This document shows positions 18,947 through 58,699 of a stretch of 64,000 bases of DNA, in pieces. The translations under genes were made by a program, and so were the position numbers. Where the stretch lies: positions 13,782 to 77,781 of the forward strand of contig NIVC01003765.1 of NCBI GenBank assembly GCA_002269645.1, written 5' to 3'. Positions within the stretch are counted from its first letter, which is position 1. Each line of letters opens with the position of its first letter. The notes under the pieces were generated by a model. It saw only the letters and a program-made list of their open reading frames with translations, had not been told where the DNA came from and made no database searches. The DNA comes from Macrostomum lignano (Eukaryota).

Positions 18947-20734
18947 ATGGCCTCAAGCTATAATGCTGGGCGACCGCTGCCGCTTGTGGTGTCCGTGAAA
19001 GAGCGAACTGAAACTGGACCAAGGTTTGAGCTCGATGCAGAAGTGCTGAAGCAGATGATGGATTTGGACAAACTGAGCAGCGCCAAGGTGGCCGTCATCA
19101 GCGTGACCGGAGCCTTCCGCACAGGCAAGTCCTTCCTGCTCAACTTCTTCCTGAGATACCTCCGAGCTCTCAGTCGAGGTGACACTCGTGACTGGATTCT
19201 ATCTGAGGACCAGCTAGACGACGGATTCCACTGGAGATCCGGGATTGAGAGAGACACCACCGGGATCCTCATCTGGTCCGAGCCGTTCTTCATCCGCAAG
19301 CCCGACGGACAAGAGGTGGCCGTGCTGCTGATGGACACTCAGGGCACATTCGATCACCAGTCGACTCAGCAGGACTGCACAACTATCTTTGCCTTCAGCA
19401 CACTGATGAGCTCAGTGCAGATCCTCAACATTTCTCAGAAGGTCCAGGAGACGGATCTGCAGCACCTGCGGCTGTTTGTCGAGTTCGCTGGGATGGCGAA
19501 GGGCTCGAAGGAGAAGGCGCTGCAACACCTGTGGTTCCTTATCAGAGATTGGCAGAATCCTGATGATTTTGAGTACGGAGTCGCTGACGGAGCGGAGTAT
19601 TTAAAGCAGATCTTAAAGTGCGACGAGCAGATGCCGAGAGAGAACCAGGAACTGAGGCAGGGCATCACGCATCACTTCGAGCAGGCGTCATGCTGTCTGC
19701 TGCCGCATCCTGGAAACGCCGTAGCCTCGTCGAAGTTCCGCGGCGAGCTTAAAAAACTTGATGCAATGTTTGTCGACGAGCTGGAAAAGTTTGTGGCCCT
19801 CATCGCGTCACCTGAGAACATTCCAGTGAAGCAGATCAACGGCAGAGACTTCAAGGGTGTGGACTTCTTCGCTCTGAAGGAGTACTTTGACGCCATTTGC
19901 AGCAGCAGGCTGCCAACTCCGAGAAGCATATTTACGGCCACCGTCGACATGATCAACGTTCTCGCTGCCTCGGAGGCGAAGCAGCTCTTTGAGACGAAGA
20001 TCCAGGAGTTCTTCCGATCGGAGTCGTCGTTGGACATTAGCTCTGCCGAGATGGACAAAGTCCTCGCCGGCATCGAGAAAGAGGCGTTAAAGCTGTTCAA
20101 CTCTCGGTGCATGGAAGTCGCGGATTTTGACGTTGACTGCGTGAAGAGGAGGCTGCAGGAGGAGCTGCGATCGATTGGCAGCAAGCAGGCGCTGCTGCTC
20201 CAAGAGACTGCAAGGAAGAAGGAGGCGGACGCGAGGGCGGACTTGCTGGCGAAGGAGCTCGAGACCCAGCGGGCGGCGTACGCTGAGGGCGTGCAGAAGA
20301 TGCAGCAGTTGGAGGCTGACTTCCAGAAGCGAGTGGAGGAGATTCGGGCGAACAGCGTGAGCAAGGAAGAGATGACTCGACGACTGAAAGTGGAATCGGA
20401 TAGTTACAACATGCGGATCAGCTGTCTGGAAACCGATAAAAGGTTTATGGAAGGTCGTCTCTCTGAATTAAGCCGCAGCCAAAGCGAGAAATCCAACAGT
20501 GCTGTGCAGCGGCTTGAACGCGAGGTCAGCAGTCTTCGGAATGAGAAGGAAAAGCTCGACAGAGAACGAAACGAGGAGCGTAGAAACGCTAACAGAGAAA
20601 TTTCGGAGATCCAAAGAAACTTGGAAGCAGTGATGTTCGCGCTGAAAAATGAAGAGGCCAACAGTAGACAGAGTGCCCAAAAGCTGAACGAGATACAAGA
20701 TAGCTTCAATAAAGGCAACTGTGTGATGATGTGA
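18947..20734 (+). CDS. Atlastin-family GTPase, soluble coiled-coil form with CaaX (paralog 1, 595 aa)
   Basis: G1 GAFRTGKS, G2 ERDTTG, G3 DTQG, G4 IRDW, LLPHPG and helical middle domain as in atlastin; no TM segment; coiled coil; ends GNCVMM*. First ATG at 18947; no introns in the CDS. Confidence 0.92.
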   Translation: MASSYNAGRPLPLVVSVKERTETGPRFELDAEVLKQMMDLDKLSSAKVAVISVTGAFRTGKSFLLNFFLRYLRALSRGDTRDWILSEDQLDDGFHWRSGIERDTTGILIWSEPFFIRKPDGQEVAVLLMDTQGTFDHQSTQQDCTTIFAFSTLMSSVQILNISQKVQETDLQHLRLFVEFAGMAKGSKEKALQHLWFLIRDWQNPDDFEYGVADGAEYLKQILKCDEQMPRENQELRQGITHHFEQASCCLLPHPGNAVASSKFRGELKKLDAMFVDELEKFVALIASPENIPVKQINGRDFKGVDFFALKEYFDAICSSRLPTPRSIFTATVDMINVLAASEAKQLFETKIQEFFRSESSLDISSAEMDKVLAGIEKEALKLFNSRCMEVADFDVDCVKRRLQEELRSIGSKQALLLQETARKKEADARADLLAKELETQRAAYAEGVQKMQQLEADFQKRVEEIRANSVSKEEMTRRLKVESDSYNMRISCLETDKRFMEGRLSELSRSQSEKSNSAVQRLEREVSSLRNEKEKLDRERNEERRNANREISEIQRNLEAVMFALKNEEANSRQSAQKLNEIQDSFNKGNCVMM

Positions 20735-21962: not shown

Positions 21963-23843
21963 CTATTTCCCATCAGCTTCCTTTCCTTTTGGATCTTCCT
22001 GCTTCTGCGAAGCTGGGGGCTGAATCATGGGAAACGGGATGAAGGTTGGGGTTGAAGCCGCGGCTGCGGCAGAGCAAGAACTGGCGCCTCTTTTCTCGCT
22101 GCCACTGAAAAAATTCGAAATCGTTCCTTTAACAATTTCACCCCCAGCAGCCTGCAAAACTCCGAAAAGAAAATTCTCCCACTTAGCACTGCGTTCGGCT
22201 TCCTGCTCCCGACGTCTGCGCTCTTCTTCCATGTGCTTCTCCCACTGCGCCATCATCTGCTTTGCGTTGGCATCCTGCTGCCTGCGTTCCTCTTGGCTCT
22301 CGCGCACCTGGCGCTGCAGCTCCTCGTTCATCTTTAGCAGGGATTCTATCTTGGCTGCCTGCCGCGAGCTGCGCGCCTCGGACTCCTGCAGGGCCAATTG
22401 GCGTTGCATGGACTCTTTTTCTAGCAGCGACCGCATCTCCTCCTTGGACACGGACGACTCCAAGATTCTTTTCACTTTTTCCTGGAATTCCTGCTCCAGT
22501 TGCTGCATCCTTCTGTTGGTATCAACTTTCTCATCAAGGAGACGTTGAAAGTCTTGCTGCAGCAACTCTCCTTTCTTCTGCTCAGCGATCTTGTCAGACT
22601 TCAGCTGGTTCATTAGTATCAAATCCTGCACCTCCCTCTGTAGATCGTCGTGCAGTTTTCGTCGGCACTTGTCGCAGTCGGTTGAGTCCTTCTGCATGCA
22701 GCGCTTGTCGAATTGTTCGAGCGATTCGTCGGCCAATTTCTGCAGCTGTGGCTCCAATTCGATTGCGTCAACAGCGGATGCGGAGGCTGAAATCGGCCTG
22801 GCCTTGTCAACAAACGTCTGTCTGGCGGATGCGGCAACCACAGCGTTCGTCAATTCGACGGTGGCCGAGAACAGCGACTTTGGCGAAGGTAGCCTGCCGC
22901 TGCGGAAGGCCTCGAAGTAGACTTTGGCGAAGTTCAGCAGCTCGCGCCCAGTGAGTTCTCTTCCATTAACTGCTTTAATGACAAGCTTTTCAGGTGATAG
23001 CACGAGTTCCACAAACTTCTCAACCTCCTCAACAAAGTCTTCATCTAGCTTTTCCAGCTCCCCTCGAACATTCGATCTAGTCGCACACTTCCCAGGGCTG
23101 GGCAGCAGGCAGCAAAACATGCGAAATATTTCCTAATGCCTGCGCGGAGCTCACGGTTTTCAGCCGGCATGTTCTCATCTGACGCCACTACCTTGCGTAG
23201 ATATCTCATACCGCCGGCATGGCCGTTCTCGAACTCATCGGGGTTTTGCCAGTCCCGAATTAGAAACCACAAGTCTTGAAGGACCTTTTCGCTTTCATCC
23301 TTTGCCATCGAGGCGAACTCAACGAACAGTCGGAGGTGCTGCAGATCCGTCTCTTGAATGTTCTGCGAGATGTTGAAGATCTGCACTGAGCTCAGTAGTG
23401 TGCTGAAGACGAAGATTGAGGTGCTATTCCTGCTGAGTCGACTGGTGATCGAATGTACCCTGAGTGTCCATCAGCAGCACGGCCACCGCTTCTCCGTCGG
23501 GCTTGCGGATGAAGAACGGCTCGGACCAGATGAGGATGCCGGTGGTGTCTCTCTCGATCCCGGCTCTCCAGTGGAATTCGTCATCGAGCTGGTCATCAGA
23601 TCGAATCCAGTCTCGAGTGTCTCCTCGACTGAGAGCTCTGAGGTATCTCAGGAAGAAGTTGAGCAGGAAGGACTTGCCTTTACGAAATGCCCCGGCAACA
23701 CTGACTACAGCGACTTTAGACCGAAGGAAGCGCTTAGATGAAAGAATTCGACGCTCGATGCCAGCGTTCAGTTTGAATCTCTCGACGCTCTCAGACTCAC
23801 CGCTTGCTAGCTCTGCCAGGTAGACAACCTCGCCAGTCGTCAT
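21963..23843 (-). pseudogene. Atlastin-family GTPase paralog 2, two frameshifts (pseudogene or assembly error)
   Basis: Three overlapping ORFs (23843-23424, 23386-23045, 23120-21963) reconstruct a full paralog; +1 insertion at ~23425 (gaa t[a]gc acc, creating TAG) and a ~4-nt deletion at ~23120; tail WENFLFGVLQAAGGEIVKGTISNFF, no CaaX. Confidence 0.8.
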
Positions 23844-24723: not shown

Positions 24724-26394
24724 ATGGCTTCATCAGTACGGAGCGGACCGATCCACCTCGTCCAGCTAGCTGAAGACACAGAAGATGACTGCATGCGATT
24801 CGAGTTCAACGCTGATATCTTCAAGCAAATGCGAAACGCTCAAAAGCTAGCGACCTGCAAGGTGGTTCTCATTAGCGTGGCCGGAGCCTTCCGCAAGGGC
24901 AAGTCTTTCCTGCTCAACTTCTTCCTGAGATACCTCCGAGCTCTCAGTCGAGGTGACACTCGAGACTGGATTCGATCTGATGACCAGCTCGATGACGGAT
25001 TCCACTGGAGAGCCGGGAGCGAGAGAGACACCACCGGGATCCTCATCTGGTCCGAGCCGTTCTTCATCCGCAAGCCCGACGGACAAGAGGTAGCCGTGCT
25101 GCTGATGGACACTCAGGGCGCATTCGATCACCAGTCGACTCAAAGAGACTGCGCTACGATCTTTGGATTCAGCACACTTCTGAGTTCGGTGCAAATTTTC
25201 AACATCTCGCAGAACATCCAGGAAACAGATCTGCAGCACCTCCGACTGTTTGTCGAGTTTGCTTCAATGGCGAGAGAGTCGAAGGATAAGAAAGTTCTTC
25301 AGCATCTGTGGTTCCTCACCAGAGACTGGCAGAATTCGCACGAGCATGACTATGGTTCTACTGGTGGACAGGAATACCTGGACAAAGTCCTTGCGTGCGA
25401 TAGCCGTAAGCCGAAGGAGAACCAGGAGCTCAGGCTGGGCATCAAGCGGTACTTCGAGCGCGCATCCTGCTGCTTGCTGCCGCATCCAGGAAAGGCAGTT
25501 GCAGCCAAAGACTTCCGAGGTGAAATACATCGACTGGATCCCGAGTTCGTGGATGAAATGGAGAAGTTCATTCCAGTCATTGCCAGTCCACAAGCGCTGG
25601 TAGTAAAAAAGGTGAACGGAACCGAACTTCCTGGAAAAGAGCTATTCAAGTTTTTTGACATATATTTCGAAGCCTTTAAAAACGGGAAAATGCCTACTCC
25701 AAGAAACATTTTCGATGCAACAGTTGAGATGGCAAACATCACCGCTGCTCAGGGGGCGAGGCAGATGTTTGAAGACTCTCTGGATCCGGACCTCCATGAT
25801 GACGAGTTTTTCGACATTCTAGAAGTCCTGAAGCAACAGTCACTGGAATATTTTCTTTCCAACTGCATGCAGCCAGAATCCGCGGCTACCAAGAAGACTC
25901 TGGAGAAGCTGCAAGAGGAGATCCAAGGGCTGCTTGATAACAAGAAGTTCGTCAGGAGGCTGCAGTCGAGGACTTTGAGCGCCGACAGAAAAAACCAACA
26001 ATTGCAGCACGAAATCGGGAGACTGCAGCTACAGAACATGGACGTATTGCAACAGATGGAAAACATGGAGGAGAACTTTAGGAGGACTGAGGAAGAAATC
26101 AGGAGGCAAAGCGTCTCAAAGGATGAAATGGATCGCTTACTGCAAGACTTGTCAATGCAGCACCTTGCTGACAAGATGAAAATTCAGGCTGATAGCGAGA
26201 AGCTTGTGGGAAAAGTGAACCAACTCGCGGAAATGAATTCACAATTGAAAAACCAGCTCTCTGTTCGCCAGCAAGAGGCTCAGCGCTCCTTTGAAAGGCG
26301 AGAACAGTTGAGGCAGAGTGAGGTGGCCGAACTGCAAAGTCGGATTTCCCAGCTCGAGTCGAGAAAACCAAAAAGATCGTGCGTCTTGATGTAG
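24724..26394 (+). CDS. Atlastin-family GTPase, soluble coiled-coil form with polybasic CaaX (paralog 3, 556 aa)
   Basis: GAFRKGKS, SERDTTG, DTQG, TRDW motifs; no TM; ends RKPKRSCVLM*. Confidence 0.92.
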   Translation: MASSVRSGPIHLVQLAEDTEDDCMRFEFNADIFKQMRNAQKLATCKVVLISVAGAFRKGKSFLLNFFLRYLRALSRGDTRDWIRSDDQLDDGFHWRAGSERDTTGILIWSEPFFIRKPDGQEVAVLLMDTQGAFDHQSTQRDCATIFGFSTLLSSVQIFNISQNIQETDLQHLRLFVEFASMARESKDKKVLQHLWFLTRDWQNSHEHDYGSTGGQEYLDKVLACDSRKPKENQELRLGIKRYFERASCCLLPHPGKAVAAKDFRGEIHRLDPEFVDEMEKFIPVIASPQALVVKKVNGTELPGKELFKFFDIYFEAFKNGKMPTPRNIFDATVEMANITAAQGARQMFEDSLDPDLHDDEFFDILEVLKQQSLEYFLSNCMQPESAATKKTLEKLQEEIQGLLDNKKFVRRLQSRTLSADRKNQQLQHEIGRLQLQNMDVLQQMENMEENFRRTEEEIRRQSVSKDEMDRLLQDLSMQHLADKMKIQADSEKLVGKVNQLAEMNSQLKNQLSVRQQEAQRSFERREQLRQSEVAELQSRISQLESRKPKRSCVLM

Positions 26395-32710: not shown

Positions 32711-34587
32711 CAGCAGGAATGCCAAGCCATTTTTCCGCCCGTCGAACTACCAAGGGGGGGAAAAAAATTCCCCCCCCTGACAATTTTTTTTGCTGCGCCG
32801 GAACGGAGCAACGCAGGCATACGAAATTCAAGAACATGGGCTGACTTTTTGTTGCGCACCTTCTCAAACAAGAATCAAGTCGCCAGCCATCCGGACCGTC
32901 GAGATATTCGACGATTCTTCCAGAAGGTCGGATTTTTCCCATAAGCGCTAGTGTATTCAGTACACCCCTGTGCGCCAATCAGCACTGCGCCTCAGCGCAG
33001 CCTTGCAATGCCTCCAAATTTCATCAGCACGTCGACCACATGTGTCTGCATCAGCTCTGACTTTGTTGGTCACTAGCCTTCACCCAGGCGGAGCTTCTGG
33101 ACCTTCAACAGGTGGCACCAAGTGACTATGGACACTCTGATACGAATTTCTCGAGTTTCGCTGATCAAGTCTCGACAGTGGGCATACCTCAACTGCTAGG
33201 TATCCTCAGCTAGTCTTTCGAGCCTTCCATCATCACCCCGACGCCGTCGGCACCTTCAACAGATGACACCAGGCGACTATGAACACCTTGATGCGAACTT
33301 CTCGAGTTTCACCGATCAAGCCTCGACAGTGAGCAAGCCTCAACTGCCGGACACCCTCAGCTAATCTCTCAAGCATTCAGTCATCACTCGGACGCCGTCG
33401 GAACCTTCAACAGATGACACCAGGCGACTATGAACACCTTGATGCGAACTTCTCGAGTTTCACCGATCAAGCCTCGACAGTAGGCAAGCCTCAACTGCCG
33501 GACACCCTCAGCTAGTCTCTCAAGCATTCCGTCATCATCCCGACGCCGTCGGCTCTTTCAACAGATTACAACAGGTGACTATGAACATCCTATTGCAAAT
33601 ATGTCAGGTTTTTCTGATCAAGCTTCAATATTGGGCAAACCTCAACTGCTGGACATCCTCAGCTAGTCTCTCAAGCATTCAGCCAGCACCCCGACGCCGT
33701 CGGCACCTTCAACAGGTGGCACCAGGGGAGTAATGACACCTGAGCGTGATTTTTCATCATGCTCTTAACATTTCTGAAGCTCTCAGATTTTTTTAAGCAC
33801 GAACATTGGTATAGTTAAGCTTGAACTCATGTTGCTGTATATTTATATTATTATTACACATACTTTTATGCATACGAGCTACATACATATTTTATTCGAA
33901 AAGCTGTTTAGTTTATTCAGCTATAATATTGAACCCAATGCAGAAAGGGTTATGCTTTTAAAAAGCCAGTAAATTCAGTCGGTTTTTTCATTTTTTTAAT
34001 GATTCAGAAATGTTAAGAGCATGATGAAAAATCACGCTCACGTGTCATTACTCCCCTGGTGCCACCTGTTGAAGGTGCCGACGGCGTCGGGGTGATGACT
34101 GAATGCTTGAGAGACTAGCTGAAGATGTTCTGCGGTTGAGGCTTGCCCATTGGCAAGGCTTGATCAGCGAAACTCGAGAAATTCGTATCAGAGTGTCCAT
34201 AGTCACTTGGTGCCACCTGTTGAAGGTCCAGAAGCTCCGCCTGGGTGAAGGCTAGTGACCAACGAAGTCAGAGCTGATGCAGACACATGTGGTCGACGTG
34301 CTGATGAAATTTGGAGGCTTGGCAAGGCTGCGCTGAGGCGCAGTGCTGATTGGCGCACAGGGGTGTACTGAATACACTAGCGCTTATGGGAAAAATCCGA
34401 CCTTCTGGCAGAATCGTCGAATATCTCGACGGTCCGGATGGCTGGCGACTTGATTCTTGTTTGAGAAGGTGCGCAACAAAAAGTTAGCCCGTGTTCTTGA
34501 ATTTTGTGTGTCTGCGTTGCTCCGTTCCGGCGCAGCAAAAAAAATTGTCAGGGGGGGGGGAATTTCCCCCCCTTGGTAGTTCTACTG
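32711..34587. mobile_element. TTAA-flanked non-autonomous foldback DNA transposon (1877 bp)
   Basis: TTAA at 32707-32710 and 34588-34591; left arm 32711-33778 and right arm 34003-34587 are inverted repeats around an AT-rich spacer; 151-bp subrepeat (33102, 33253, 33404, 33555, 33706) expanded in the left arm; no transposase ORF. Confidence 0.85.
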
Positions 34588-41000: not shown

Positions 41001-44000
41001 CCACAGCACCATTAAAGGACAATACAGAACAGACCAACAGACAGCCACAGCACCATTAAAGGACAATACAGAACAGACCAACAGACAGCCACAGCACCAT
41101 TAAAGGACAATACAGAACAGACCAACAGACAGCCACAGCACCATTAAAGGACAATACAGAACAGACCAACAGACAGCCACAGCACCATTAAAGGACAATA
41201 CAGAACAGACCAACAGACAGCCACAGCACCATTAAAGGACAATACAGAACAGACCAACAGACAGCCACAGCACCATTAAAGGACAATACAGAACAGACCA
41301 ACAGACAGCCACAGCACCATTAAAGGACAATACAGAACAGACCAACAGACAGCCACAGCACCATTAAAGGACAATACAGAACAGACCAACAGACAGCCAC
41401 AGCACCATTAAAGGACAATACAGAACAGACCAACAGACAGCCACAGCACCATTAAAGGACAATACAGAACAGACCAACAGACAGCCACAGCACCATTAAA
41501 GGACAATACAGAACAGACCAACAGACAGCCACAGCACCATTAAAGGACAATACAGAACAGACCAACAGACAGCCACAGCACCATTAAAGGACAATACAGA
41601 ACAGACCAACAGACAGCCACAGCACCATTAAAGGACAATACAGAACAGACCAACAGACAGCCACAGCACCATTAAAGGACAATACAGAACAGACCAACAG
41701 ACAGCCACAGCACCATTAAAGGACAATACAGAACAGACCAACAGACAGCCACAGCACCATTAAAGGACAATACAGAACAGACCAACAGACAGCCACAGCA
41801 CCATTAAAGGACAATACAGAACAGACCAACAGACAGCCACAGCACCATTAAAGGACAATACAGAACAGACCAACAGACAGCCACAGCACCATTAAAGGAC
41901 AATACAGAACAGACCAACAGACAGCCACAGCACCATTAAAGGACAATACAGAACAGACCAACAGACAGCCACAGCACCATTAAAGGACAATACAGAACAG
42001 ACCAACAGACAGCCACAGCACCATTAAAGGACAATACAGAACAGACCAACAGACAGCCACAGCACCATTAAAGGACAATACAGAACAGACCAACAGACAG
42101 CCACAGCACCATTAAAGGACAATACAGAACAGACCAACAGACAGCCACAGCACCATTAAAGGACAATACAGAACAGACCAACAGACAGCCACAGCACCAT
42201 TAAAGGACAATACAGAACAGACCAACAGACAGCCACAGCACCATTAAAGGACAATACAGAACAGACCAACAGACAGCCACAGCACCATTAAAGGACAATA
42301 CAGAACAGACCAACAGACAGCCACAGCACCATTAAAGGACAATACAGAACAGACCAACAGACAGCCACAGCACCATTAAAGGACAATACAGAACAGACCA
42401 ACAGACAGCCACAGCACCATTAAAGGACAATACAGAACAGACCAACAGACAGCCACAGCACCATTAAAGGACAATACAGAACAGACCAACAGACAGCCAC
42501 AGCACCATTAAAGGACAATACAGAACAGACCAACAGACAGCCACAGCACCATTAAAGGACAATACAGAACAGACCAACAGACAGCCACAGCACCATTAAA
42601 GGACAATACAGAACAGACCAACAGACAGCCACAGCACCATTAAAGGACAATACAGAACAGACCAACAGACAGCCACAGCACCATTAAAGGACAATACAGA
42701 ACAGACCAACAGACAGCCACAGCACCATTAAAGGACAATACAGAACAGACCAACAGACAGCCACAGCACCATTAAAGGACAATACAGAACAGACCAACAG
42801 ACAGCCACAGCACCATTAAAGGACAATACAGAACAGACCAACAGACAGCCACAGCACCATTAAAGGACAATACAGAACAGACCAACAGACAGCCACAGCA
42901 CCATTAAAGGACAATACAGAACAGACCAACAGACAGCCACAGCACCATTAAAGGACAATACAGAACAGACCAACAGACAGCCACAGCACCATTAAAGGAC
43001 AATACAGAACAGACCAACAGACAGCCACAGCACCATTAAAGGACAATACAGAACAGACCAACAGACAGCCACAGCACCATTAAAGGACAATACAGAACAG
43101 ACCAACAGACAGCCACAGCACCATTAAAGGACAATACAGAACAGACCAACAGACAGCCACAGCACCATTAAAGGACAATACAGAACAGACCAACAGACAG
43201 CCACAGCACCATTAAAGGACAATACAGAACAGACCAACAGACAGCCACAGCACCATTAAAGGACAATACAGAACAGACCAACAGACAGCCACAGCACCAT
43301 TAAAGGACAATACAGAACAGACCAACAGACAGCCACAGCACCATTAAAGGACAATACAGAACAGACCAACAGACAGCCACAGCACCATTAAAGGACAATA
43401 CAGAACAGACCAACAGACAGCCACAGCACCATTAAAGGACAATACAGAACAGACCAACAGACAGCCACAGCACCATTAAAGGACAATACAGAACAGACCA
43501 ACAGACAGCCACAGCACCATTAAAGGACAATACAGAACAGACCAACAGACAGCCACAGCACCATTAAAGGACAATACAGAACAGACCAACAGACAGCCAC
43601 AGCACCATTAAAGGACAATACAGAACAGACCAACAGACAGCCACAGCACCATTAAAGGACAATACAGAACAGACCAACAGACAGCCACAGCACCATTAAA
43701 GGACAATACAGAACAGACCAACAGACAGCCACAGCACCATTAAAGGACAATACAGAACAGACCAACAGACAGCCACAGCACCATTAAAGGACAATACAGA
43801 ACAGACCAACAGACAGCCACAGCACCATTAAAGGACAATACAGAACAGACCAACAGACAGCCACAGCACCATTAAAGGACAATACAGAACAGACCAACAG
43901 ACAGCCACAGCACCATTAAAGGACAATACAGAACAGACCAACAGACAGCCACAGCACCATTAAAGGACAATACAGAACAGACCAACAGACAGCCACAGCA

Positions 44001-47000
44001 CCATTAAAGGACAATACAGAACAGACCAACAGACAGCCACAGCACCATTAAAGGACAATACAGAACAGACCAACAGACAGCCACAGCACCATTAAAGGAC
44101 AATACAGAACAGACCAACAGACAGCCACAGCACCATTAAAGGACAATACAGAACAGACCAACAGACAGCCACAGCACCATTAAAGGACAATACAGAACAG
44201 ACCAACAGACAGCCACAGCACCATTAAAGGACAATACAGAACAGACCAACAGACAGCCACAGCACCATTAAAGGACAATACAGAACAGACCAACAGACAG
44301 CCACAGCACCATTAAAGGACAATACAGAACAGACCAACAGACAGCCACAGCACCATTAAAGGACAATACAGAACAGACCAACAGACAGCCACAGCACCAT
44401 TAAAGGACAATACAGAACAGACCAACAGACAGCCACAGCACCATTAAAGGACAATACAGAACAGACCAACAGACAGCCACAGCACCATTAAAGGACAATA
44501 CAGAACAGACCAACAGACAGCCACAGCACCATTAAAGGACAATACAGAACAGACCAACAGACAGCCACAGCACCATTAAAGGACAATACAGAACAGACCA
44601 ACAGACAGCCACAGCACCATTAAAGGACAATACAGAACAGACCAACAGACAGCCACAGCACCATTAAAGGACAATACAGAACAGACCAACAGACAGCCAC
44701 AGCACCATTAAAGGACAATACAGAACAGACCAACAGACAGCCACAGCACCATTAAAGGACAATACAGAACAGACCAACAGACAGCCACAGCACCATTAAA
44801 GGACAATACAGAACAGACCAACAGACAGCCACAGCACCATTAAAGGACAATACAGAACAGACCAACAGACAGCCACAGCACCATTAAAGGACAATACAGA
44901 ACAGACCAACAGACAGCCACAGCACCATTAAAGGACAATACAGAACAGACCAACAGACAGCCACAGCACCATTAAAGGACAATACAGAACAGACCAACAG
45001 ACAGCCACAGCACCATTAAAGGACAATACAGAACAGACCAACAGACAGCCACAGCACCATTAAAGGACAATACAGAACAGACCAACAGACAGCCACAGCA
45101 CCATTAAAGGACAATACAGAACAGACCAACAGACAGCCACAGCACCATTAAAGGACAATACAGAACAGACCAACAGACAGCCACAGCACCATTAAAGGAC
45201 AATACAGAACAGACCAACAGACAGCCACAGCACCATTAAAGGACAATACAGAACAGACCAACAGACAGCCACAGCACCATTAAAGGACAATACAGAACAG
45301 ACCAACAGACAGCCACAGCACCATTAAAGGACAATACAGAACAGACCAACAGACAGCCACAGCACCATTAAAGGACAATACAGAACAGACCAACAGACAG
45401 CCACAGCACCATTAAAGGACAATACAGAACAGACCAACAGACAGCCACAGCACCATTAAAGGACAATACAGAACAGACCAACAGACAGCCACAGCACCAT
45501 TAAAGGACAATACAGAACAGACCAACAGACAGCCACAGCACCATTAAAGGACAATACAGAACAGACCAACAGACAGCCACAGCACCATTAAAGGACAATA
45601 CAGAACAGACCAACAGACAGCCACAGCACCATTAAAGGACAATACAGAACAGACCAACAGACAGCCACAGCACCATTAAAGGACAATACAGAACAGACCA
45701 ACAGACAGCCACAGCACCATTAAAGGACAATACAGAACAGACCAACAGACAGCCACAGCACCATTAAAGGACAATACAGAACAGACCAACAGACAGCCAC
45801 AGCACCATTAAAGGACAATACAGAACAGACCAACAGACAGCCACAGCACCATTAAAGGACAATACAGAACAGACCAACAGACAGCCACAGCACCATTAAA
45901 GGACAATACAGAACAGACCAACAGACAGCCACAGCACCATTAAAGGACAATACAGAACAGACCAACAGACAGCCACAGCACCATTAAAGGACAATACAGA
46001 ACAGACCAACAGACAGCCACAGCACCATTAAAGGACAATACAGAACAGACCAACAGACAGCCACAGCACCATTAAAGGACAATACAGAACAGACCAACAG
46101 ACAGCCACAGCACCATTAAAGGACAATACAGAACAGACCAACAGACAGCCACAGCACCATTAAAGGACAATACAGAACAGACCAACAGACAGCCACAGCA
46201 CCATTAAAGGACAATACAGAACAGACCAACAGACAGCCACAGCACCATTAAAGGACAATACAGAACAGACCAACAGACAGCCACAGCACCATTAAAGGAC
46301 AATACAGAACAGACCAACAGACAGCCACAGCACCATTAAAGGACAATACAGAACAGACCAACAGACAGCCACAGCACCATTAAAGGACAATACAGAACAG
46401 ACCAACAGACAGCCACAGCACCATTAAAGGACAATACAGAACAGACCAACAGACAGCCACAGCACCATTAAAGGACAATACAGAACAGACCAACAGACAG
46501 CCACAGCACCATTAAAGGACAATACAGAACAGACCAACAGACAGCCACAGCACCATTAAAGGACAATACAGAACAGACCAACAGACAGCCACAGCACCAT
46601 TAAAGGACAATACAGAACAGACCAACAGACAGCCACAGCACCATTAAAGGACAATACAGAACAGACCAACAGACAGCCACAGCACCATTAAAGGACAATA
46701 CAGAACAGACCAACAGACAGCCACAGCACCATTAAAGGACAATACAGAACAGACCAACAGACAGCCACAGCACCATTAAAGGACAATACAGAACAGACCA
46801 ACAGACAGCCACAGCACCATTAAAGGACAATACAGAACAGACCAACAGACAGCCACAGCACCATTAAAGGACAATACAGAACAGACCAACAGACAGCCAC
46901 AGCACCATTAAAGGACAATACAGAACAGACCAACAGACAGCCACAGCACCATTAAAGGACAATACAGAACAGACCAACAGACAGCCACAGCACCATTAAA

Positions 47001-50000
47001 GGACAATACAGAACAGACCAACAGACAGCCACAGCACCATTAAAGGACAATACAGAACAGACCAACAGACAGCCACAGCACCATTAAAGGACAATACAGA
47101 ACAGACCAACAGACAGCCACAGCACCATTAAAGGACAATACAGAACAGACCAACAGACAGCCACAGCACCATTAAAGGACAATACAGAACAGACCAACAG
47201 ACAGCCACAGCACCATTAAAGGACAATACAGAACAGACCAACAGACAGCCACAGCACCATTAAAGGACAATACAGAACAGACCAACAGACAGCCACAGCA
47301 CCATTAAAGGACAATACAGAACAGACCAACAGACAGCCACAGCACCATTAAAGGACAATACAGAACAGACCAACAGACAGCCACAGCACCATTAAAGGAC
47401 AATACAGAACAGACCAACAGACAGCCACAGCACCATTAAAGGACAATACAGAACAGACCAACAGACAGCCACAGCACCATTAAAGGACAATACAGAACAG
47501 ACCAACAGACAGCCACAGCACCATTAAAGGACAATACAGAACAGACCAACAGACAGCCACAGCACCATTAAAGGACAATACAGAACAGACCAACAGACAG
47601 CCACAGCACCATTAAAGGACAATACAGAACAGACCAACAGACAGCCACAGCACCATTAAAGGACAATACAGAACAGACCAACAGACAGCCACAGCACCAT
47701 TAAAGGACAATACAGAACAGACCAACAGACAGCCACAGCACCATTAAAGGACAATACAGAACAGACCAACAGACAGCCACAGCACCATTAAAGGACAATA
47801 CAGAACAGACCAACAGACAGCCACAGCACCATTAAAGGACAATACAGAACAGACCAACAGACAGCCACAGCACCATTAAAGGACAATACAGAACAGACCA
47901 ACAGACAGCCACAGCACCATTAAAGGACAATACAGAACAGACCAACAGACAGCCACAGCACCATTAAAGGACAATACAGAACAGACCAACAGACAGCCAC
48001 AGCACCATTAAAGGACAATACAGAACAGACCAACAGACAGCCACAGCACCATTAAAGGACAATACAGAACAGACCAACAGACAGCCACAGCACCATTAAA
48101 GGACAATACAGAACAGACCAACAGACAGCCACAGCACCATTAAAGGACAATACAGAACAGACCAACAGACAGCCACAGCACCATTAAAGGACAATACAGA
48201 ACAGACCAACAGACAGCCACAGCACCATTAAAGGACAATACAGAACAGACCAACAGACAGCCACAGCACCATTAAAGGACAATACAGAACAGACCAACAG
48301 ACAGCCACAGCACCATTAAAGGACAATACAGAACAGACCAACAGACAGCCACAGCACCATTAAAGGACAATACAGAACAGACCAACAGACAGCCACAGCA
48401 CCATTAAAGGACAATACAGAACAGACCAACAGACAGCCACAGCACCATTAAAGGACAATACAGAACAGACCAACAGACAGCCACAGCACCATTAAAGGAC
48501 AATACAGAACAGACCAACAGACAGCCACAGCACCATTAAAGGACAATACAGAACAGACCAACAGACAGCCACAGCACCATTAAAGGACAATACAGAACAG
48601 ACCAACAGACAGCCACAGCACCATTAAAGGACAATACAGAACAGACCAACAGACAGCCACAGCACCATTAAAGGACAATACAGAACAGACCAACAGACAG
48701 CCACAGCACCATTAAAGGACAATACAGAACAGACCAACAGACAGCCACAGCACCATTAAAGGACAATACAGAACAGACCAACAGACAGCCACAGCACCAT
48801 TAAAGGACAATACAGAACAGACCAACAGACAGCCACAGCACCATTAAAGGACAATACAGAACAGACCAACAGACAGCCACAGCACCATTAAAGGACAATA
48901 CAGAACAGACCAACAGACAGCCACAGCACCATTAAAGGACAATACAGAACAGACCAACAGACAGCCACAGCACCATTAAAGGACAATACAGAACAGACCA
49001 ACAGACAGCCACAGCACCATTAAAGGACAATACAGAACAGACCAACAGACAGCCACAGCACCATTAAAGGACAATACAGAACAGACCAACAGACAGCCAC
49101 AGCACCATTAAAGGACAATACAGAACAGACCAACAGACAGCCACAGCACCATTAAAGGACAATACAGAACAGACCAACAGACAGCCACAGCACCATTAAA
49201 GGACAATACAGAACAGACCAACAGACAGCCACAGCACCATTAAAGGACAATACAGAACAGACCAACAGACAGCCACAGCACCATTAAAGGACAATACAGA
49301 ACAGACCAACAGACAGCCACAGCACCATTAAAGGACAATACAGAACAGACCAACAGACAGCCACAGCACCATTAAAGGACAATACAGAACAGACCAACAG
49401 ACAGCCACAGCACCATTAAAGGACAATACAGAACAGACCAACAGACAGCCACAGCACCATTAAAGGACAATACAGAACAGACCAACAGACAGCCACAGCA
49501 CCATTAAAGGACAATACAGAACAGACCAACAGACAGCCACAGCACCATTAAAGGACAATACAGAACAGACCAACAGACAGCCACAGCACCATTAAAGGAC
49601 AATACAGAACAGACCAACAGACAGCCACAGCACCATTAAAGGACAATACAGAACAGACCAACAGACAGCCACAGCACCATTAAAGGACAATACAGAACAG
49701 ACCAACAGACAGCCACAGCACCATTAAAGGACAATACAGAACAGACCAACAGACAGCCACAGCACCATTAAAGGACAATACAGAACAGACCAACAGACAG
49801 CCACAGCACCATTAAAGGACAATACAGAACAGACCAACAGACAGCCACAGCACCATTAAAGGACAATACAGAACAGACCAACAGACAGCCACAGCACCAT
49901 TAAAGGACAATACAGAACAGACCAACAGACAGCCACAGCACCATTAAAGGACAATACAGAACAGACCAACAGACAGCCACAGCACCATTAAAGGACAATA

Positions 50001-51861
50001 CAGAACAGACCAACAGACAGCCACAGCACCATTAAAGGACAATACAGAACAGACCAACAGACAGCCACAGCACCATTAAAGGACAATACAGAACAGACCA
50101 ACAGACAGCCACAGCACCATTAAAGGACAATACAGAACAGACCAACAGACAGCCACAGCACCATTAAAGGACAATACAGAACAGACCAACAGACAGCCAC
50201 AGCACCATTAAAGGACAATACAGAACAGACCAACAGACAGCCACAGCACCATTAAAGGACAATACAGAACAGACCAACAGACAGCCACAGCACCATTAAA
50301 GGACAATACAGAACAGACCAACAGACAGCCACAGCACCATTAAAGGACAATACAGAACAGACCAACAGACAGCCACAGCACCATTAAAGGACAATACAGA
50401 ACAGACCAACAGACAGCCACAGCACCATTAAAGGACAATACAGAACAGACCAACAGACAGCCACAGCACCATTAAAGGACAATACAGAACAGACCAACAG
50501 ACAGCCACAGCACCATTAAAGGACAATACAGAACAGACCAACAGACAGCCACAGCACCATTAAAGGACAATACAGAACAGACCAACAGACAGCCACAGCA
50601 CCATTAAAGGACAATACAGAACAGACCAACAGACAGCCACAGCACCATTAAAGGACAATACAGAACAGACCAACAGACAGCCACAGCACCATTAAAGGAC
50701 AATACAGAACAGACCAACAGACAGCCACAGCACCATTAAAGGACAATACAGAACAGACCAACAGACAGCCACAGCACCATTAAAGGACAATACAGAACAG
50801 ACCAACAGACAGCCACAGCACCATTAAAGGACAATACAGAACAGACCAACAGACAGCCACAGCACCATTAAAGGACAATACAGAACAGACCAACAGACAG
50901 CCACAGCACCATTAAAGGACAATACAGAACAGACCAACAGACAGCCACAGCACCATTAAAGGACAATACAGAACAGACCAACAGACAGCCACAGCACCAT
51001 TAAAGGACAATACAGAACAGACCAACAGACAGCCACAGCACCATTAAAGGACAATACAGAACAGACCAACAGACAGCCACAGCACCATTAAAGGACAATA
51101 CAGAACAGACCAACAGACAGCCACAGCACCATTAAAGGACAATACAGAACAGACCAACAGACAGCCACAGCACCATTAAAGGACAATACAGAACAGACCA
51201 ACAGACAGCCACAGCACCATTAAAGGACAATACAGAACAGACCAACAGACAGCCACAGCACCATTAAAGGACAATACAGAACAGACCAACAGACAGCCAC
51301 AGCACCATTAAAGGACAATACAGAACAGACCAACAGACAGCCACAGCACCATTAAAGGACAATACAGAACAGACCAACAGACAGCCACAGCACCATTAAA
51401 GGACAATACAGAACAGACCAACAGACAGCCACAGCACCATTAAAGGACAATACAGACAGACCAACAGACAGCCACAGCACCATTAAAGGACAATACAGAC
51501 AGACCAACAGACAGCCACAGCACCATTAAAGGACAATACAGACAGACCAACAGACAGCCACAGCACCATTAAAGGACAATACAGACAGACCAACAGACAG
51601 CCACAGCACCATTAAAGGACAATACAGACAGACCAACAGACAGCCACAGCACCATTAAAGGACAATACAGACAGACCAACAGACAGCCACAGCACCATTA
51701 AAGGACAATACAGGACAGACCAACAGACAGCCACAGCACCATTAAAGGACAATACAGGACAGACCAACAGACAGCCACAGCACCATTAAAGGACAATACA
51801 GGACAGACCAGACAGCCACAACACCATTAATGTACAATACAGGACAGACAGACCACAGCAC
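38071..51861. repeat. Satellite array, 44-bp unit (acagaacagaccaacagacagccacagcaccattaaaggacaat), ~313 copies, 13.8 kb
   Basis: The printed 60-nt lines repeat every 660 bp (15 units); only a few variants seen (A>T at 39799, 39843, 39887, 39975, 40107; 43-bp units ~51455-51710; A>G units near the end). Confidence 0.99.
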
Positions 51862-53104: not shown

Positions 53105-53245
53105 AGCCTTTACTATTCTACTAACTCTAATGAGTCTACGGTTTATAGTGAGTCTACGGTTTCTACTGAGTCTACAAAGTCTACTGAGTATACTGAGTCT
53201 ACGGTTTCTACTGAGTCTACTACCGGTAAGTCTACTGAGCATACT
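53105..53245. repeat. Short 9/18-bp repeat (tgagtctac...) downstream of paralog 5
   Basis: Direct inspection. Confidence 0.8.
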
Positions 53246-53358
53246 ATTCTCAGCAGAAAAAAGACAGCCACACAGAACCCAAGTCTCTGAAAAAGTTTGG
53301 AGCCTGAACTATTTTGGGTAAATAAGAACCACAAAAATTCACCTTATTCTGCCGATGA

Positions 53359-55020
53359 TCACTGGATTGAACATCCACCGCCTCGTGGCGCTGCTGCCGC
53401 CTCGTGGCGGATACTCTCACACCTCATTCTTTCACGCTCTTCCAGCCTCGCATTTTCGATCTTAAGGTTTATAAGCTCAATCTGTGCAGCGGAACTTTGA
53501 GCACTCATGGTTTGCATCTGACTTATCTGCCTCCTTAGCTCGTTATTCTTCTCCTCCATCTTTATTCGAGCAACGTCTTGTTTGAGCGCTTCTTCCTGCA
53601 GCTTCCTCTCCATCTCCTCTTTGGAAATGCTCTCCGACTTGATCTGCTCGATTGTTGTCTTGAATGTGGCTTCCATCTCCTGCATCTGCTTCTGCCGGTC
53701 TTGAGTCTGCTGCTTTAGGCCCTCCATCTCGCCCTTCAGCAAGTCCGACTTCTTCTCGGCCGTTAGCTTCTCCGATCTGAGCTGCCTGTTCAGGACAGCC
53801 TTGTCTTTCAGCTCGGTTAGGTCATCTTGGAGCTTCTTTTTCGCTTTCCGGACTTCAGACGAGTCGCTCTCCATGCACTTGGAGTTGAAAGCATCCAGCG
53901 CCTCCTTTGAAGCTTCATCAACTGCCGCTTGAAACTCTTCGTCACTCTTCGCTGGATCCAAAAAGCTCTTGACTTTGTCTTCGAACAGTCTTTTTGAGTT
54001 TGAAGCAGCGGTCATGTTGACCATCTCGACAGTGGCGGAGAAAACACTCGACGGAGTTGGCATCCTGCCGCTGCTGAAAGCCTCAAAGTAAACCTCCATG
54101 AAGTCGATGAGCTCGCTGCCAGAGAGCTCATTGCCGTTGACTTTCTTAACTGTGATGTTCTCTGGAGCGGCGATCTTCTCAACAAAGCTCTCGATTTCTT
54201 CAACAAACTCCGTCTCTAGTCTCTGGACATCGCCCGTGAATTTAGAGTCTCTCACTGCTTTGCCTGGATGAGGCAGCAGATAGCAGGAAGCCTTCTCGAA
54301 GTGCTTCTTGATTCCCTCTCGTAGCTCTTTGTTTTCTTGTGGCCTGTCAGCACTACAGTCGAGAACGGTTGACAAGTACTCGCTTCCACCTTCTTCTCCA
54401 TACTGATGCTCATCTGGGAATTGCCAGTCTCTGATCAGAAACCACAGATGCTGCAGAGCCTTTCCCTCTGAGCTCTTTGCCAAAGCCGCGAACTCAACGA
54501 ACAGGCGCAGATTCTGCAGATCCGCCTCGGAGATGTTCTGCGAAAGGTTGAAGATCTGCACGGAGCTCAGCAGCGTGCTGAACGCAAAGATGGTCGTGCA
54601 GTCCTGCTGAGTCGTCTGGTGATCGAACGTGCCCTGAGTGTCCATCAGCAGCACGGCCACCTCTTGTCCGTCGGGCTTGCGGATGAAGAACGGCTGCGAC
54701 CAGAGAAGAATTCCAGTCGTATCTCGCTTGGATCCGGACTTCCAGTGGAATCCGCTTCTATGATGGTCATCCGAGTTAATCCAGTCTTCTGTGTTTCCAC
54801 TTACCAGGGCGGTCAGGTAGCGCAGAAAGAAGTTGAGCAAGAAGGACTTGCCTTTTCGGAAGGCTCCGGCCACGCAGATGATGGCGATCTTCGCTTTCAA
54901 CATTCGGTCAAGGTCTTTGACCTGTGCTGAGATCTTAGGATTCAAACTAAATCCGGTATTTTTCTCATCAGGAATGATGAGTTGTATTGCGGTAGCAGTG
55001 GTTTCAGTTGGGCTCGCCAT
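53359..55020 (-). CDS. Atlastin-family GTPase, soluble coiled-coil form with CaaX (paralog 5, 553 aa)
   Basis: GAFRKGKS, SKRDTTG, DTQG, IRDW; no TM; ends PRGGGCSIQ*; first ATG at 55020. Confidence 0.92.
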   Translation of the reverse strand: MASPTETTATAIQLIIPDEKNTGFSLNPKISAQVKDLDRMLKAKIAIICVAGAFRKGKSFLLNFFLRYLTALVSGNTEDWINSDDHHRSGFHWKSGSKRDTTGILLWSQPFFIRKPDGQEVAVLLMDTQGTFDHQTTQQDCTTIFAFSTLLSSVQIFNLSQNISEADLQNLRLFVEFAALAKSSEGKALQHLWFLIRDWQFPDEHQYGEEGGSEYLSTVLDCSADRPQENKELREGIKKHFEKASCYLLPHPGKAVRDSKFTGDVQRLETEFVEEIESFVEKIAAPENITVKKVNGNELSGSELIDFMEVYFEAFSSGRMPTPSSVFSATVEMVNMTAASNSKRLFEDKVKSFLDPAKSDEEFQAAVDEASKEALDAFNSKCMESDSSEVRKAKKKLQDDLTELKDKAVLNRQLRSEKLTAEKKSDLLKGEMEGLKQQTQDRQKQMQEMEATFKTTIEQIKSESISKEEMERKLQEEALKQDVARIKMEEKNNELRRQISQMQTMSAQSSAAQIELINLKIENARLEERERMRCESIRHEAAAAPRGGGCSIQ

Positions 55021-55279
55021 CGCAAATATTAAAAAGCTTTTCTTCAAACAACTTTAGCTCAGGCGTGACTCTTGGTACACTGGACTAACAACTTGTTTCC
55101 GTCACAGGCTACTTTATACCTTGAAGAGTTTCTGCTAATAGATTTGGTCTGGCTGCAACTTTAAACTCAAGTGTTCGAGCGCACTGCGTTCCTTGTTTTA
55201 TAGCTCTTAGTGAACTTCTGAAAAGCGAAGTTTCCTTTTTCTACTGTACTGTTTACGAAGTAGAATCGAAGTTTCCTTA

Positions 55280-55765
55280 CCGCAAGTACACTGGTTAAAA
55301 GGGAAGTTCCCTCTCCGCAAGTACACTGATTAAAAGGGAAGTTCTCTCTCCGCAAGTACACTGGATAAAAAGGAAGTTCCATCTCCGCAAGTACACTGGT
55401 TAAAAGGGAAGTTCTCTCTCCGCAAGTACACTGGTTAAAAAGGAAGTTCCATCTCCGCAAGTACACTGGTTAAAAGGGAAGTTCTCTCTCCGCAAGTACA
55501 CTGGTTAAAAGGGAAGTTCCTCTCCGCAAGTACACTGGTTAAAAGTGAGGTTCCCTCTCCGCAAGTACACTGGTTAAAAGGGAAGTTCTCTCTCCGCAAG
55601 TACACTGGTTAAAAGTGAAGTTACATTTCTGCAAGTGCATTGGTTAAAAGTGAAGTTCTCTCTCCGCAAGTACACTGGTTAAAGGGAAGTTCCATCTCTA
55701 CAAGTCCACTGATCAGAAGTGAAGCTCGATCTCTGCAAGTGCACTGGTTAAAAGTGAAGTTCCTT
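55280..55765. repeat. 35-bp minisatellite upstream of paralog 5 (ccgcaagtacactggttaaaagggaagttctctct)n
   Basis: Period 35 (55281, 55316 ...), about 14 copies. Confidence 0.9.
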
Positions 55766-56893: not shown

Positions 56894-58699
56894 TCACTGC
56901 TGTTTGCATCTCTTGTCGAGCTTGCCGACTTCAGAATCTTCTGTTATTTGGTTTTCTTGAGCATCTGGTCTCTCTCTGTCTTGTGCGATCCCAGATGCCT
57001 GGGCTCGATGCCTTCCATCCGTTCTTTCGTAGTGCTCGTACTCAGCGATGTAGCCTTCTTTTATTTCCTCTGTGCTCAACTTCAAATCATCATGGTGTCT
57101 TCTCTCCTCTTCTGTCTTCCTTCTCGATGGCTCCAGTCTCGATTCCATGGTCCTACGTTGCTCCTCCACCATCGCTTCACTGGCTTGCTTTTGTAGCTCG
57201 GCAAGTTTCGATGTCAATTGCAGGTTTTCCTGCTCCATTTTCCACTGGTTGATCTGGTGCTGCATGCTCTCCTTCTGCAACTTTTTCTCGAATTCGTCTC
57301 TTGATGCCATACCCTGCGAAAGCTCTTTCATGCTCTGCTGGAACCTCTGCTCCATCTCAACCATTCGTCTCGCAACCTCCTCGTTGTCCTTGTGCAGACT
57401 CTCGATGTCATTGGCGAGCATCTGGTTTCTCTCCTCCTCGGCAATCTTTTCGGATCGCAGCTGGTTCATGAGTCGGTGATGTTGCGACTGCTGCTGAAGG
57501 TCTTCTTCAAGACCCGCCCGGCAGTCAGCCGTGGCTTCAGAGCTCTTCTGCATGCAGTTCTTGTCAAAGTAGGCCAGCGCTTCCAGAGTCGCTGCACCGA
57601 GTAGGCTCTCGAACTCTTCGTCAGTGACCGCGGCTGCTGGATCGACTCGTGAGGCCACTTTCTGTTCGAACAGCTCTTTGGATGCCTTCGACACGGCCAG
57701 GTTCGTCAAGTCCACGGTGGCCGACAGGATGGTGCGCGATGACGGAAGCCTTCCGCTGCGAAAAGCTTCGTAATAGACTTCGGCGAAGGTTATCAGCTCG
57801 GAGCCCGTCAGCGCTCTCCCGTTGACGGCCTTGGAAGCGAGGCACTCAGGTGACAATATTCTAGCGGAAAGTTTATCGATCTCCGCCAAAAACTCCGGGC
57901 TGATTTTGTCCAGCTCTCCGTGAAAATCCTTTCTGGTAACAGCGAATCCGGGGTGCGGCAGAAGGCAACAAGACGTGTTTTCAAAAAACTTTCGGATGCC
58001 CTGCCGAAGCTCCAAGTTTTCCATTGGCTTTTTCGGATCGCACTCCAGGACCTTGTCAAGGTACTGGCGTCCGCCTTCTACACCGAACTCGTACTCATCA
58101 GGGTACTGCCAGTCTCTGATGAGGAACCACAGATGCTGGAGCACAGAGTCCTGCGAGTCCGAAGCGATCGATGCGAACTCGACAAATAGTCGGAGGTGCT
58201 GCAGATCTGTCTCCTGGATGTTCTGCGAGATGTTGAAGATCTGAACTGAGCTCAGCAGCGTGCTGAAGGCAAAGATTGATGTGCAGTCCTGCTGAGTGGA
58301 CTGGTGATCGAATGTGCCCTGAGTGTCCATCAGTAGCACGGCCACCTCTTGTCCGTCGGGCTTGCGGATGAAGAACGGCTCGGACCAGATGAGGATCCCG
58401 GTGGTGTCTCTCTCGCTCCCGGATCTCCAGTGGAATCCGTCTGAGAGCCTCTCGTCGGACCAAAGCCACTGCGAAGCATCGCCGCAACTCGCGGCCTTCA
58501 AGAAGCGAAGAAAAAAGTTGAGCAGGAATGACTTGCCCTTGCGAAAGGCTCCGGCAACGCTGATCACAGCAACCTTGCTCTTCTGGAGCCGGTCAGCGGA
58601 CTGCATCTCCGCCCAGATATTTGGGTTCAGTCGAAACCTCTCTGCCCCGGATTCGGACTCGACCAGAGTTGTGAGTTGCACTGGATGTGGGACCTCCAT
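56894..58699 (-). CDS. Atlastin-family GTPase, coiled-coil form ending CKQQ (paralog 6, 601 aa)
   Basis: GAFRKGKS, SERDTTG, DTQG, IRDW; no TM; ends KRCKQQ*. The last ~45 aa lose coiled-coil character, so a late frameshift cannot be excluded. Confidence 0.88.
   Translation of the reverse strand: MEVPHPVQLTTLVESESGAERFRLNPNIWAEMQSADRLQKSKVAVISVAGAFRKGKSFLLNFFLRFLKAASCGDASQWLWSDERLSDGFHWRSGSERDTTGILIWSEPFFIRKPDGQEVAVLLMDTQGTFDHQSTQQDCTSIFAFSTLLSSVQIFNISQNIQETDLQHLRLFVEFASIASDSQDSVLQHLWFLIRDWQYPDEYEFGVEGGRQYLDKVLECDPKKPMENLELRQGIRKFFENTSCCLLPHPGFAVTRKDFHGELDKISPEFLAEIDKLSARILSPECLASKAVNGRALTGSELITFAEVYYEAFRSGRLPSSRTILSATVDLTNLAVSKASKELFEQKVASRVDPAAAVTDEEFESLLGAATLEALAYFDKNCMQKSSEATADCRAGLEEDLQQQSQHHRLMNQLRSEKIAEEERNQMLANDIESLHKDNEEVARRMVEMEQRFQQSMKELSQGMASRDEFEKKLQKESMQHQINQWKMEQENLQLTSKLAELQKQASEAMVEEQRRTMESRLEPSRRKTEEERRHHDDLKLSTEEIKEGYIAEYEHYERTDGRHRAQASGIAQDRERPDAQENQITEDSEVGKLDKRCKQQ

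Follow-up and report, generated by a model that had tools for sequence, protein, structure and literature searches.

We analysed the final 64 kb of the 77.8-kb contig NIVC01003765.1 from the flatworm Macrostomum lignano (assembly GCA_002269645.1), here called the window. Positions 8947-36394 of the window matched the sequence retrieved from this contig with 100% identity. Positions 18947-58699 of the window contain six genes for atlastin-type GTPases, arranged in the order A(+), B(-), C(+), D(+), E(-) and F(-), with a satellite array between D and E. Five of the six genes (A, C, D, E and F) are uninterrupted single open reading frames (ORFs) of 553-601 amino acids, and none of the copies in the cluster contains an intron. 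An earlier note on this DNA had described six full-length paralogs. The six genes are indeed present, but only five of them are intact, while B contains two frameshifts. The genes are as follows:

18947-20734, plus strand: paralog A, an intact single-exon ORF of 595 amino acids from its ATG, with the P-loop GAFRTGKS and the end NKGNCVMM (canonical CaaX box, X = M); Pfam GBP match at 8.9e-63.
21963-23843, minus strand: paralog B, with two frameshifts, the motif LLPSPG, no CaaX box, and a hydrophobic stretch, FLFGVLQAAGG, in its tail.
24724-26394, plus strand: paralog C, intact, 556 amino acids, with the end SRKPKRSCVLM (polybasic residues and a canonical CaaX box); Pfam GBP match at 1.8e-66; an AlphaFold model was made.
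35387-37150, plus strand: paralog D, intact, 587 amino acids, with the motif LLPYPG, no CaaX box, and the end LRLWFQS; Pfam GBP match at 7.8e-64.
53359-55020, minus strand: paralog E, intact, 553 amino acids from its ATG, with the motif KRDTTG and the end PRGGGCSIQ (canonical CaaX box, X = Q); Pfam GBP match at 3.6e-63.
56894-58699, minus strand: paralog F, intact in the window, 601 amino acids, with the end KLDKRCKQQ (atypical CaaX-like box); Pfam GBP match at 9.1e-65.

The coding sequence of paralog B runs through frames -3, -1 and -3. One of the two shifts, near position 23430, results from the insertion of a single nucleotide, which produces a TAG in frame, and the other is located near 23060-23123. 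Since the public model of B (P0006) also has to step around both of these sites, B is probably a pseudogene. The annotated start of D is Met15 (position 35429), which yields a protein of 573 amino acids, and the 587-amino-acid form is without a database record. The end of its tail is mildly hydrophobic (VSPILSAAVPTALRLWFQS). The closest protein match of C is BOX15_Mlig009339g1 from Macrostomum lignano, with 99% identity.

The heads of the proteins contain the G motifs of atlastin (GAFRKGKS with its arginine, RDTTG, DTQG, RDW and LLPHPG), with deviations to GAFRTGKS in A, KRDTTG in E, LLPYPG in D and LLPSPG in B, and the G domain is followed by a three-helix-bundle middle domain. The motifs and the helical middle domain reported in the earlier note were thus both recovered, with these small deviations in A, B, D and E. 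The five intact proteins match the Pfam GBP N-terminal domain (PF02263) with E-values of 9e-63 to 2e-66, and positions G54, A55, R57, G59, K60, S61, T103, D129-G132, R200, D201, W202, P253, P255 and G256 are invariant across 40 aligned sequences. A phmmer search against all PDB sequences with C as the query gave human atlastin-1 (ATL1) at 2.9e-89, RNF112 (9jju) at 2.6e-36, and the best GBP, which was GBP5, at 4.5e-12. The alignment to ATL1 is colinear and pairs residues 21-403 of C with residues 42-429 of ATL1. The AlphaFold model of C has a mean predicted local distance difference test (pLDDT) score of 84.7 and places the helices of the middle domain at residues 304-319, 326-351 and 359-380. 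When this model was used in a Foldseek search, atlastin-1 was matched with an E-value of 4.6e-34, a template-modelling score of 0.84-0.87 and about 38% identity (residues 1-447 of ATL1 at a score of 0.84), while the GBPs were matched at about 1e-19 and 18% identity. Over the 406 columns of the trimmed alignment of the heads, the identity of the Macrostomum proteins is 39% with canonical atlastins, as against 24% with GBP-type proteins. On these sequence characters, we classify the heads as atlastin-type and not GBP-type.

The Pfam family matched by the heads is nevertheless named GBP, which raises the question of whether bona fide GBPs have simply expanded here and been misread as atlastins. 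The proteins also give weak matches to the GBP_C domain (PF02841), and their architecture and CaaX boxes recall those of GBP1, GBP2 and GBP5, with full-length Foldseek alignments to GBP1 and GBP2 at template-modelling scores of about 0.5. As in these vertebrate proteins, a large GTPase head of the dynamin superfamily is followed by a C-terminal part that is elongated and all-helical, with a CaaX box at its end, and the genes form a tandem cluster that includes a pseudogene. However, PF02263 and PF02841 match canonical atlastins too. The GBP_C matches score 16.8-25.5 bits against a cut-off of 24.3, with only D above it, and extend from profile position 2 to about 105-130, corresponding to residues of about 295-435 in the proteins, which is the middle domain. 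By E-value, atlastin-1 is a better match than any GBP by 77 orders of magnitude, the heads are only about 18-24% identical to those of vertebrate GBPs, and the helical domain does not appear to be the α7-13 domain of the GBPs. The motifs GAFRKGKS, RDW and LLPHPG, which are diagnostic, take the form seen in atlastins, as opposed to the YRTGKS-type P-loop and the T(L/V)RD G4 motif of the GBPs. In our phylogenies, which are distance trees inferred with neighbour-joining (NJ) only and with the silkworm protein BmAtlastin-n left out, the split between the GBPs and the rest had 100% bootstrap support. The Macrostomum clade falls on the atlastin side of this split, and the paralogs are therefore not ordinary GBPs. 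Grouping with bona fide GBPs had been named beforehand as an outcome that speaks against an atlastin origin, and it was seen neither with phmmer, nor with Foldseek, nor in the trees. We consider an expansion of GBPs to be refuted already.

The next-best solved structure, RNF112 (ZNF179; 9jju), contains a G domain of the same atlastin/GBP class. The Macrostomum proteins differ from it in that they have no RING finger, the only Pfam matches being to GBP-family domains, and no transmembrane (TM) segment, and the structure-based identity is about 20-22%. The database entry LOC432253 is RNF112, as judged by Foldseek, and no paper on LOC432253 was found.

The alignable part of the proteins ends where the TM hairpin of the canonical atlastins starts. 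A Kyte-Doolittle scan with 19-residue windows and a threshold of 1.6 gave no window at or above the threshold in any of the paralogs. The maximum was 1.41, inside the G domain, and the maximum in the last third of the proteins was at most 1.06. For comparison, four canonical atlastins have 14-22 such windows each, with maxima of 2.2-2.6. A tblastn search with 102 canonical atlastin C-termini identified no TM or tail exon in the 64-kb window, the best match being at chance level (E = 0.025). The absence of TM helices that had been noted earlier thus agrees with both the hydropathy scan and the exon search. The C-terminal amphipathic helix of atlastin has no counterpart with sequence similarity to canonical tails in the window; D and B contain short hydrophobic stretches near their ends.

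In place of the hairpin, the C-terminal 170-220 amino acids are rich in Glu, Lys, Gln and Arg and nearly lack Pro and Gly. Their heptad periodicity is above that of shuffled controls (z = 2.0-4.2), and AlphaFold predicts long tail helices at residues 387-462 and 466-546 in C and at 390-464 and 469-562 in D, with a mean pLDDT of about 84. The models thus suggest that the middle domain is followed by a pair of helices of about 75-95 amino acids each, together about 160-220 amino acids. The helices and the heptad signal support a long helical tail in place of the TM hairpin, where the earlier note had seen more than 100 amino acids of coiled coil.

The CaaX boxes are canonical in A (CVMM), C (CVLM, preceded by KPKRS) and E (CSIQ) and atypical in F (CKQQ), so that the four CaaX-like ends counted before consist of three canonical boxes and one atypical box. 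A cysteine at position -4 is found in four of the five intact proteins, even though the sequences are only 28-37% identical from the middle domain onward and differ in length. The retention of this residue in such divergent tails argues against chance and suggests selection on the box. According to the usual rule, CaaX boxes in which X is Met or Gln are recognised by farnesyltransferase, while boxes in which X is Leu are geranylgeranylated. The rule predicts that the boxes of A, C and E are of the farnesyltransferase type.

Part of the locus is repeated on two sister contigs, on which the copies are about 99% identical, and these provide information on whether the genes are functional. The copies of F at positions 4964-6765 (L002) and 6307-8111 (L003) have reading frames broken by 1-nt indels, which speaks against functional genes. 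Together with the lack of introns in all copies and the frameshifts in B, this could indicate that the genes are dead retrocopies. Alternatively, the models may be truncated and the true transcripts may splice to TM exons elsewhere; the public annotations of the locus are messy and fused, and no transcript match was recovered. However, the assembly is built from long reads, and the indels in the sister copies of F fall within its short repeats and homopolymers; they may represent either sequencing errors or decay specific to these copies. Five ORFs of more than 550 codons have stayed open at about 58% identity in the heads and 28-37% from the middle domain onward, which means that they have survived divergences of about 42% and 63-72%, respectively, with intact catalytic motifs. 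The cysteine at position -4 is placed right before the stop codon in four proteins whose tails are otherwise unalignable. Since the ORFs stop directly after the CaaX box, and no TM or tail exon is detectable in the 64 kb, splicing onward to TM exons is unlikely. Three contigs of the assembly, the flanks of which differ by about 1%, carry identical coding sequences of E, and a reading of the alignment between F and its copy on L003 gave about eight synonymous and five non-synonymous differences, mostly at third codon positions. The long ORFs that remain open despite their divergence, the invariant catalytic columns, the identical copies of E and the third-position changes in F are indirect evidence that favours functional genes, and we consider dead or truncated copies highly improbable. 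Poly(A) signal hexamers downstream of the stop codons showed an inconsistent pattern.

To learn more about the history of the family, we combined the phylogenies with profile searches. The five intact paralogs form a single clade with 99-100% bootstrap support, which joins neither the canonical atlastin of a trematode (P0301, Paragonimus kellicotti) nor any of the TM-less proteins from arthropods. A profile covering the middle domain and tail was searched exhaustively with HMMER against 1.84 billion representative proteins. Matches below 1e-30 all came from M. lignano, and the other proteins matched mainly the shared middle domain. A word-indexed search with this profile had recovered no more than two entries from M. 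lignano, known paralogs being lost because words from the coiled coil swamp the prefilter, and the exhaustive search was used instead. The monophyly and the HMMER result support the view, already expressed in the earlier note, of a lineage-specific family, here a Macrostomum-specific expansion as far as the sequences can tell. The trematode protein has the TM hairpin, although its gene model contains an internal duplicated block, and shows that the TM-bearing form of atlastin exists in the Platyhelminthes. Among the canonical atlastins, taken from sponges to vertebrates, identity is about 61%, compared with 39% between them and the Macrostomum proteins, suggesting that the family is either fast-evolving or old. 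The intronless state of the genes suggests a retroposed origin followed by tandem duplication.

One part of the genes has diverged far less than the rest. A patch of about 230-250 nt (amino acids of about 75-150) starts at the end of the P-loop helix and extends to just beyond DTQG. Its nucleotide identity is 91-96% between paralogs A, B, C, D and F; in E the value is 82%. Outside of the patch, nucleotide identity is 50-65%, and the high identity within it includes synonymous sites. This pattern resembles recurrent gene conversion limited to the switch region. A further fragment of the G domain is located upstream of A. The positions of these features are:

19172-19400, 23434-23630, 24946-25174, 35648-35876, 54576-54787 and 58261-58441: the conserved patch in the six paralogs.
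17527-17619, plus strand: a relic of a G-domain patch, with tblastn matches in two frames and blastn identities of 88-93% over 60 + 27 nt, corresponding to amino acids of about 89-128.

By its sequence matches, the relic is the degenerate remnant of a further decayed copy. Pseudogene B, this relic and the putative conversion patch are signs of a birth-and-death style of evolution in the cluster.

Since the patch covers the switch regions, the conversion may also keep the heads mutually compatible. This is relevant for the strongest of the alternative explanations, namely that the proteins are housekeeping or tissue-specific modulators of the shape of the endoplasmic reticulum (ER) or other organelles, which heterodimerise with the canonical atlastin or with each other and have no role in immunity. 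Soluble cytosolic domains of atlastin inhibit fusion in vitro, and the G domain and the three-helix bundle, which mediate the dimerisation between atlastins, are fully conserved in the Macrostomum proteins. The 91-96% identity in the segment from the end of the P-loop to DTQG is likewise what would be expected if the heads were kept compatible with one another. On the other hand, the difference between about 39% identity to the canonical atlastins and about 61% among the latter argues for a release from the canonical constraint, and at least five fast-diverging copies plus a pseudogene would be unusual for a dosage-sensitive housekeeping regulator. Furthermore, the only TM-less atlastin that has been characterised is linked to defence (PMC4926086). 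Overall, we find a role as ER modulators unlikely, but clearly less so than the presence of dead or truncated copies.

The characterised protein is BmAtlastin-n from the silkworm, described in 2016, which consists of an atlastin head and a coiled coil without a TM segment. It is cytoplasmic and enriched in the midgut, restricts the nucleopolyhedrovirus BmNPV, and was proposed to act in a GBP-like manner (PMC4926086). Two further silkworm paralogs, Atlastin3 and Atlastin4, also lack TM segments (PMC4926086). According to a review from 2022, BmAtlastin-n is also active against microsporidia, and the same review on GBPs asks whether atlastins have adopted the defence functions of GBPs in invertebrates (PMC9005921). 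The earlier note had treated such a family as apparently uncharacterised. This holds for the Macrostomum proteins, in that our literature searches identified no paper on Macrostomum and atlastin, only unrelated GBP papers for Macrostomum and GBP, and no paper on prenylated atlastins. It does not hold for the general idea, given the antiviral TM-less protein of the silkworm and the suggestion that atlastins may substitute for GBPs. TM-less atlastins are thus already known from the silkworm and other arthropods, and the flatworm cluster is an uncharacterised, lineage-specific variant.

Among the flies, ticks, mites and other arthropods, we found TM-less atlastin-like proteins in Bactrocera, Culicoides, Planococcus (a mealybug), Amblyomma, Ornithodoros and Halotydeus. 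The Macrostomum proteins resemble proteins of the BmAtlastin-n type in the atlastin-type head, the absence of TM segments and the long helical or coiled-coil C-terminal extension. However, the Macrostomum clade is separate from the arthropod TM-less atlastins in the trees, and its profile matches them only over the middle domain, the tails being unrelated. The arthropod examples that were inspected have no CaaX end, with the exception of the barnacles. In Amphibalanus amphitrite, Pollicipes pollicipes and further ENA/JGI contigs (P0153, P0286-P0291 and P0161), there is a multi-paralog, TM-less family annotated as atlastin-1-like. The barnacle proteins have the GAFRKGKS head, no TM segment and a helical tail, as in Macrostomum, and end in CTIL, CTIQ, CAIL, CNIL, CILL or CVIQ. 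They are monophyletic in 100 of 100 bootstrap replicates, were grouped with the Macrostomum proteins in none of 100, and have heads that are about 35-37% identical to those of Macrostomum. Their boxes mostly end in Leu, which predicts geranylgeranylation, whereas the Macrostomum boxes end in Met or Gln, which predicts farnesylation. The barnacle family is the closest parallel to the Macrostomum clade and, judging from the trees, independent of it. No paper on the barnacle family was found. A further protein with a CaaX end (P0142, from a sequencing run) shares only 33% identity with the barnacle protein.

The canonical atlastins, which are fusogens of the ER membrane (ATL1-3 and Drosophila atlastin), share with the Macrostomum proteins the G motifs, the three-helix bundle and the colinear match to residues 42-429 of ATL1. 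They differ in that the TM hairpin and, apparently, the canonical amphipathic tail are replaced in Macrostomum by two helices, mostly with a CaaX box, and in that the Macrostomum genes are multi-copy, intronless and fast-evolving. We propose that the cluster is a lineage-specific tandem family of intronless genes derived from the ER fusogen atlastin. The fully conserved motifs suggest that the head would bind and hydrolyse GTP and form nucleotide-dependent head-to-head dimers as in atlastin. A, C, E and possibly F would be farnesylated at the CaaX box, as predicted by the X = M/Q rule, and thereby become lipid-anchored peripheral membrane proteins, and the basic residues that precede the cysteine in C and F may help to seat them on the membrane. 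The GTP-driven dimerisation on or between membranes would then result in tethering or coating rather than fusion, since atlastin depends on its TM hairpin for fusion and the Macrostomum proteins have lost it. Such an architecture would work like a GBP built on an atlastin engine. We assign a probability of roughly 0.6 to this molecular model as a whole.

Several observations weigh against the model. No transcript-derived copies were identified among the protein collection, and look-ups with the exact proteins returned only genome contigs of GCA_002269645.1. D and B are without a CaaX box, and the box of F, CKQQ, is non-canonical. The predicted tail helices could form either a coiled coil between subunits or a hairpin that folds back, two arrangements that the AlphaFold summaries do not tell apart. 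The clade was placed basal to all atlastins with only 56% bootstrap support, a placement that is likely caused by long-branch attraction. Finally, the canonical TM atlastin of M. lignano was not among the matches listed, and the proteins could act in ordinary ER biology, either as its partners or in its place.

As for the biological role of the proposed lipid-anchored GTPases, the silkworm precedent of BmAtlastin-n and the birth-and-death style of the cluster suggest that defence or the remodelling of foreign or damaged membranes is the most likely one. The specifically immune version of this role is more tentative, and we consider it less likely than not. The same caution applies to the broader idea that flatworms have independently rebuilt a GBP-type, farnesylated, membrane-coating defence GTPase from atlastin, and that barnacles and insects have done so separately, which is possible but doubtful at present. 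Under this rebuilt-GBP hypothesis, the homogenised patch in the head would preserve the ability of the paralogs to form mixed coats with one another.

The question of whether atlastins have replaced GBPs in invertebrates has so far been addressed by a single silkworm protein. The Macrostomum cluster is a cleaner case, in that several of its paralogs unite the atlastin engine, a helical stalk and a predicted anchor of the farnesyl type. With the barnacle family as a second, independent case, it suggests convergent evolution of the GBP architecture. If the rebuilt-GBP hypothesis is true, animals would have arrived several times at the same solution for cell-autonomous immunity, a large GTPase head on a long helical stalk with a lipid anchor. 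The proteins are also natural chimeras with which to ask what an atlastin head does on a membrane without the TM hairpin, that is, whether it tethers or coats as opposed to fusing. Even if they turned out to be ER regulators instead, they would represent a new class of lipid-anchored atlastins. RNA interference and transgenesis are established in M. lignano.

The gene content of the locus is distorted in the public databases. The protein model P0002, which consists of the head of A and the body of C, was considered as a recombinant produced by unequal crossover, but was rejected as an annotation artefact because the model (L004 10001-17448) spans 7.4 kb across B and is joined inside the identical patch. 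P0003, P0004 and P0121 are likewise fused models of neighbouring paralogs, F and E being among the fusions, with junctions inside the identical patch. These fused public models are artefacts of the annotation and give an inflated or distorted picture of the family in databases.

The array that separates D from E is as follows:

38071-51849, no strand assigned: a satellite with a 44-bp unit, 13.8 kb in length, with 313 copies, 99% matches and a strong AT skew.

It divides the cluster into A-D and E-F and is a spacer rather than genic sequence. The gap between D and E measures 16.2 kb in the window, as compared to about 4.2 kb on the sister contig NIVC01000951.1 (L002), suggesting that the array either differs in length between the copies or has been collapsed in the assembly. 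Two shorter tandem repeats were also identified, one with a 35-bp unit in 14 copies between E and F (55268-55763) and one with a 151-bp unit in four copies upstream of D (33101-33741). Upstream of the cluster, positions 63-15562 on the plus strand contain exons of a large cadherin gene with at least five cadherin domains (Pfam 2.8e-70), in a region with a GC content of 55-69% and many minisatellites with periods of 9-90 bp.

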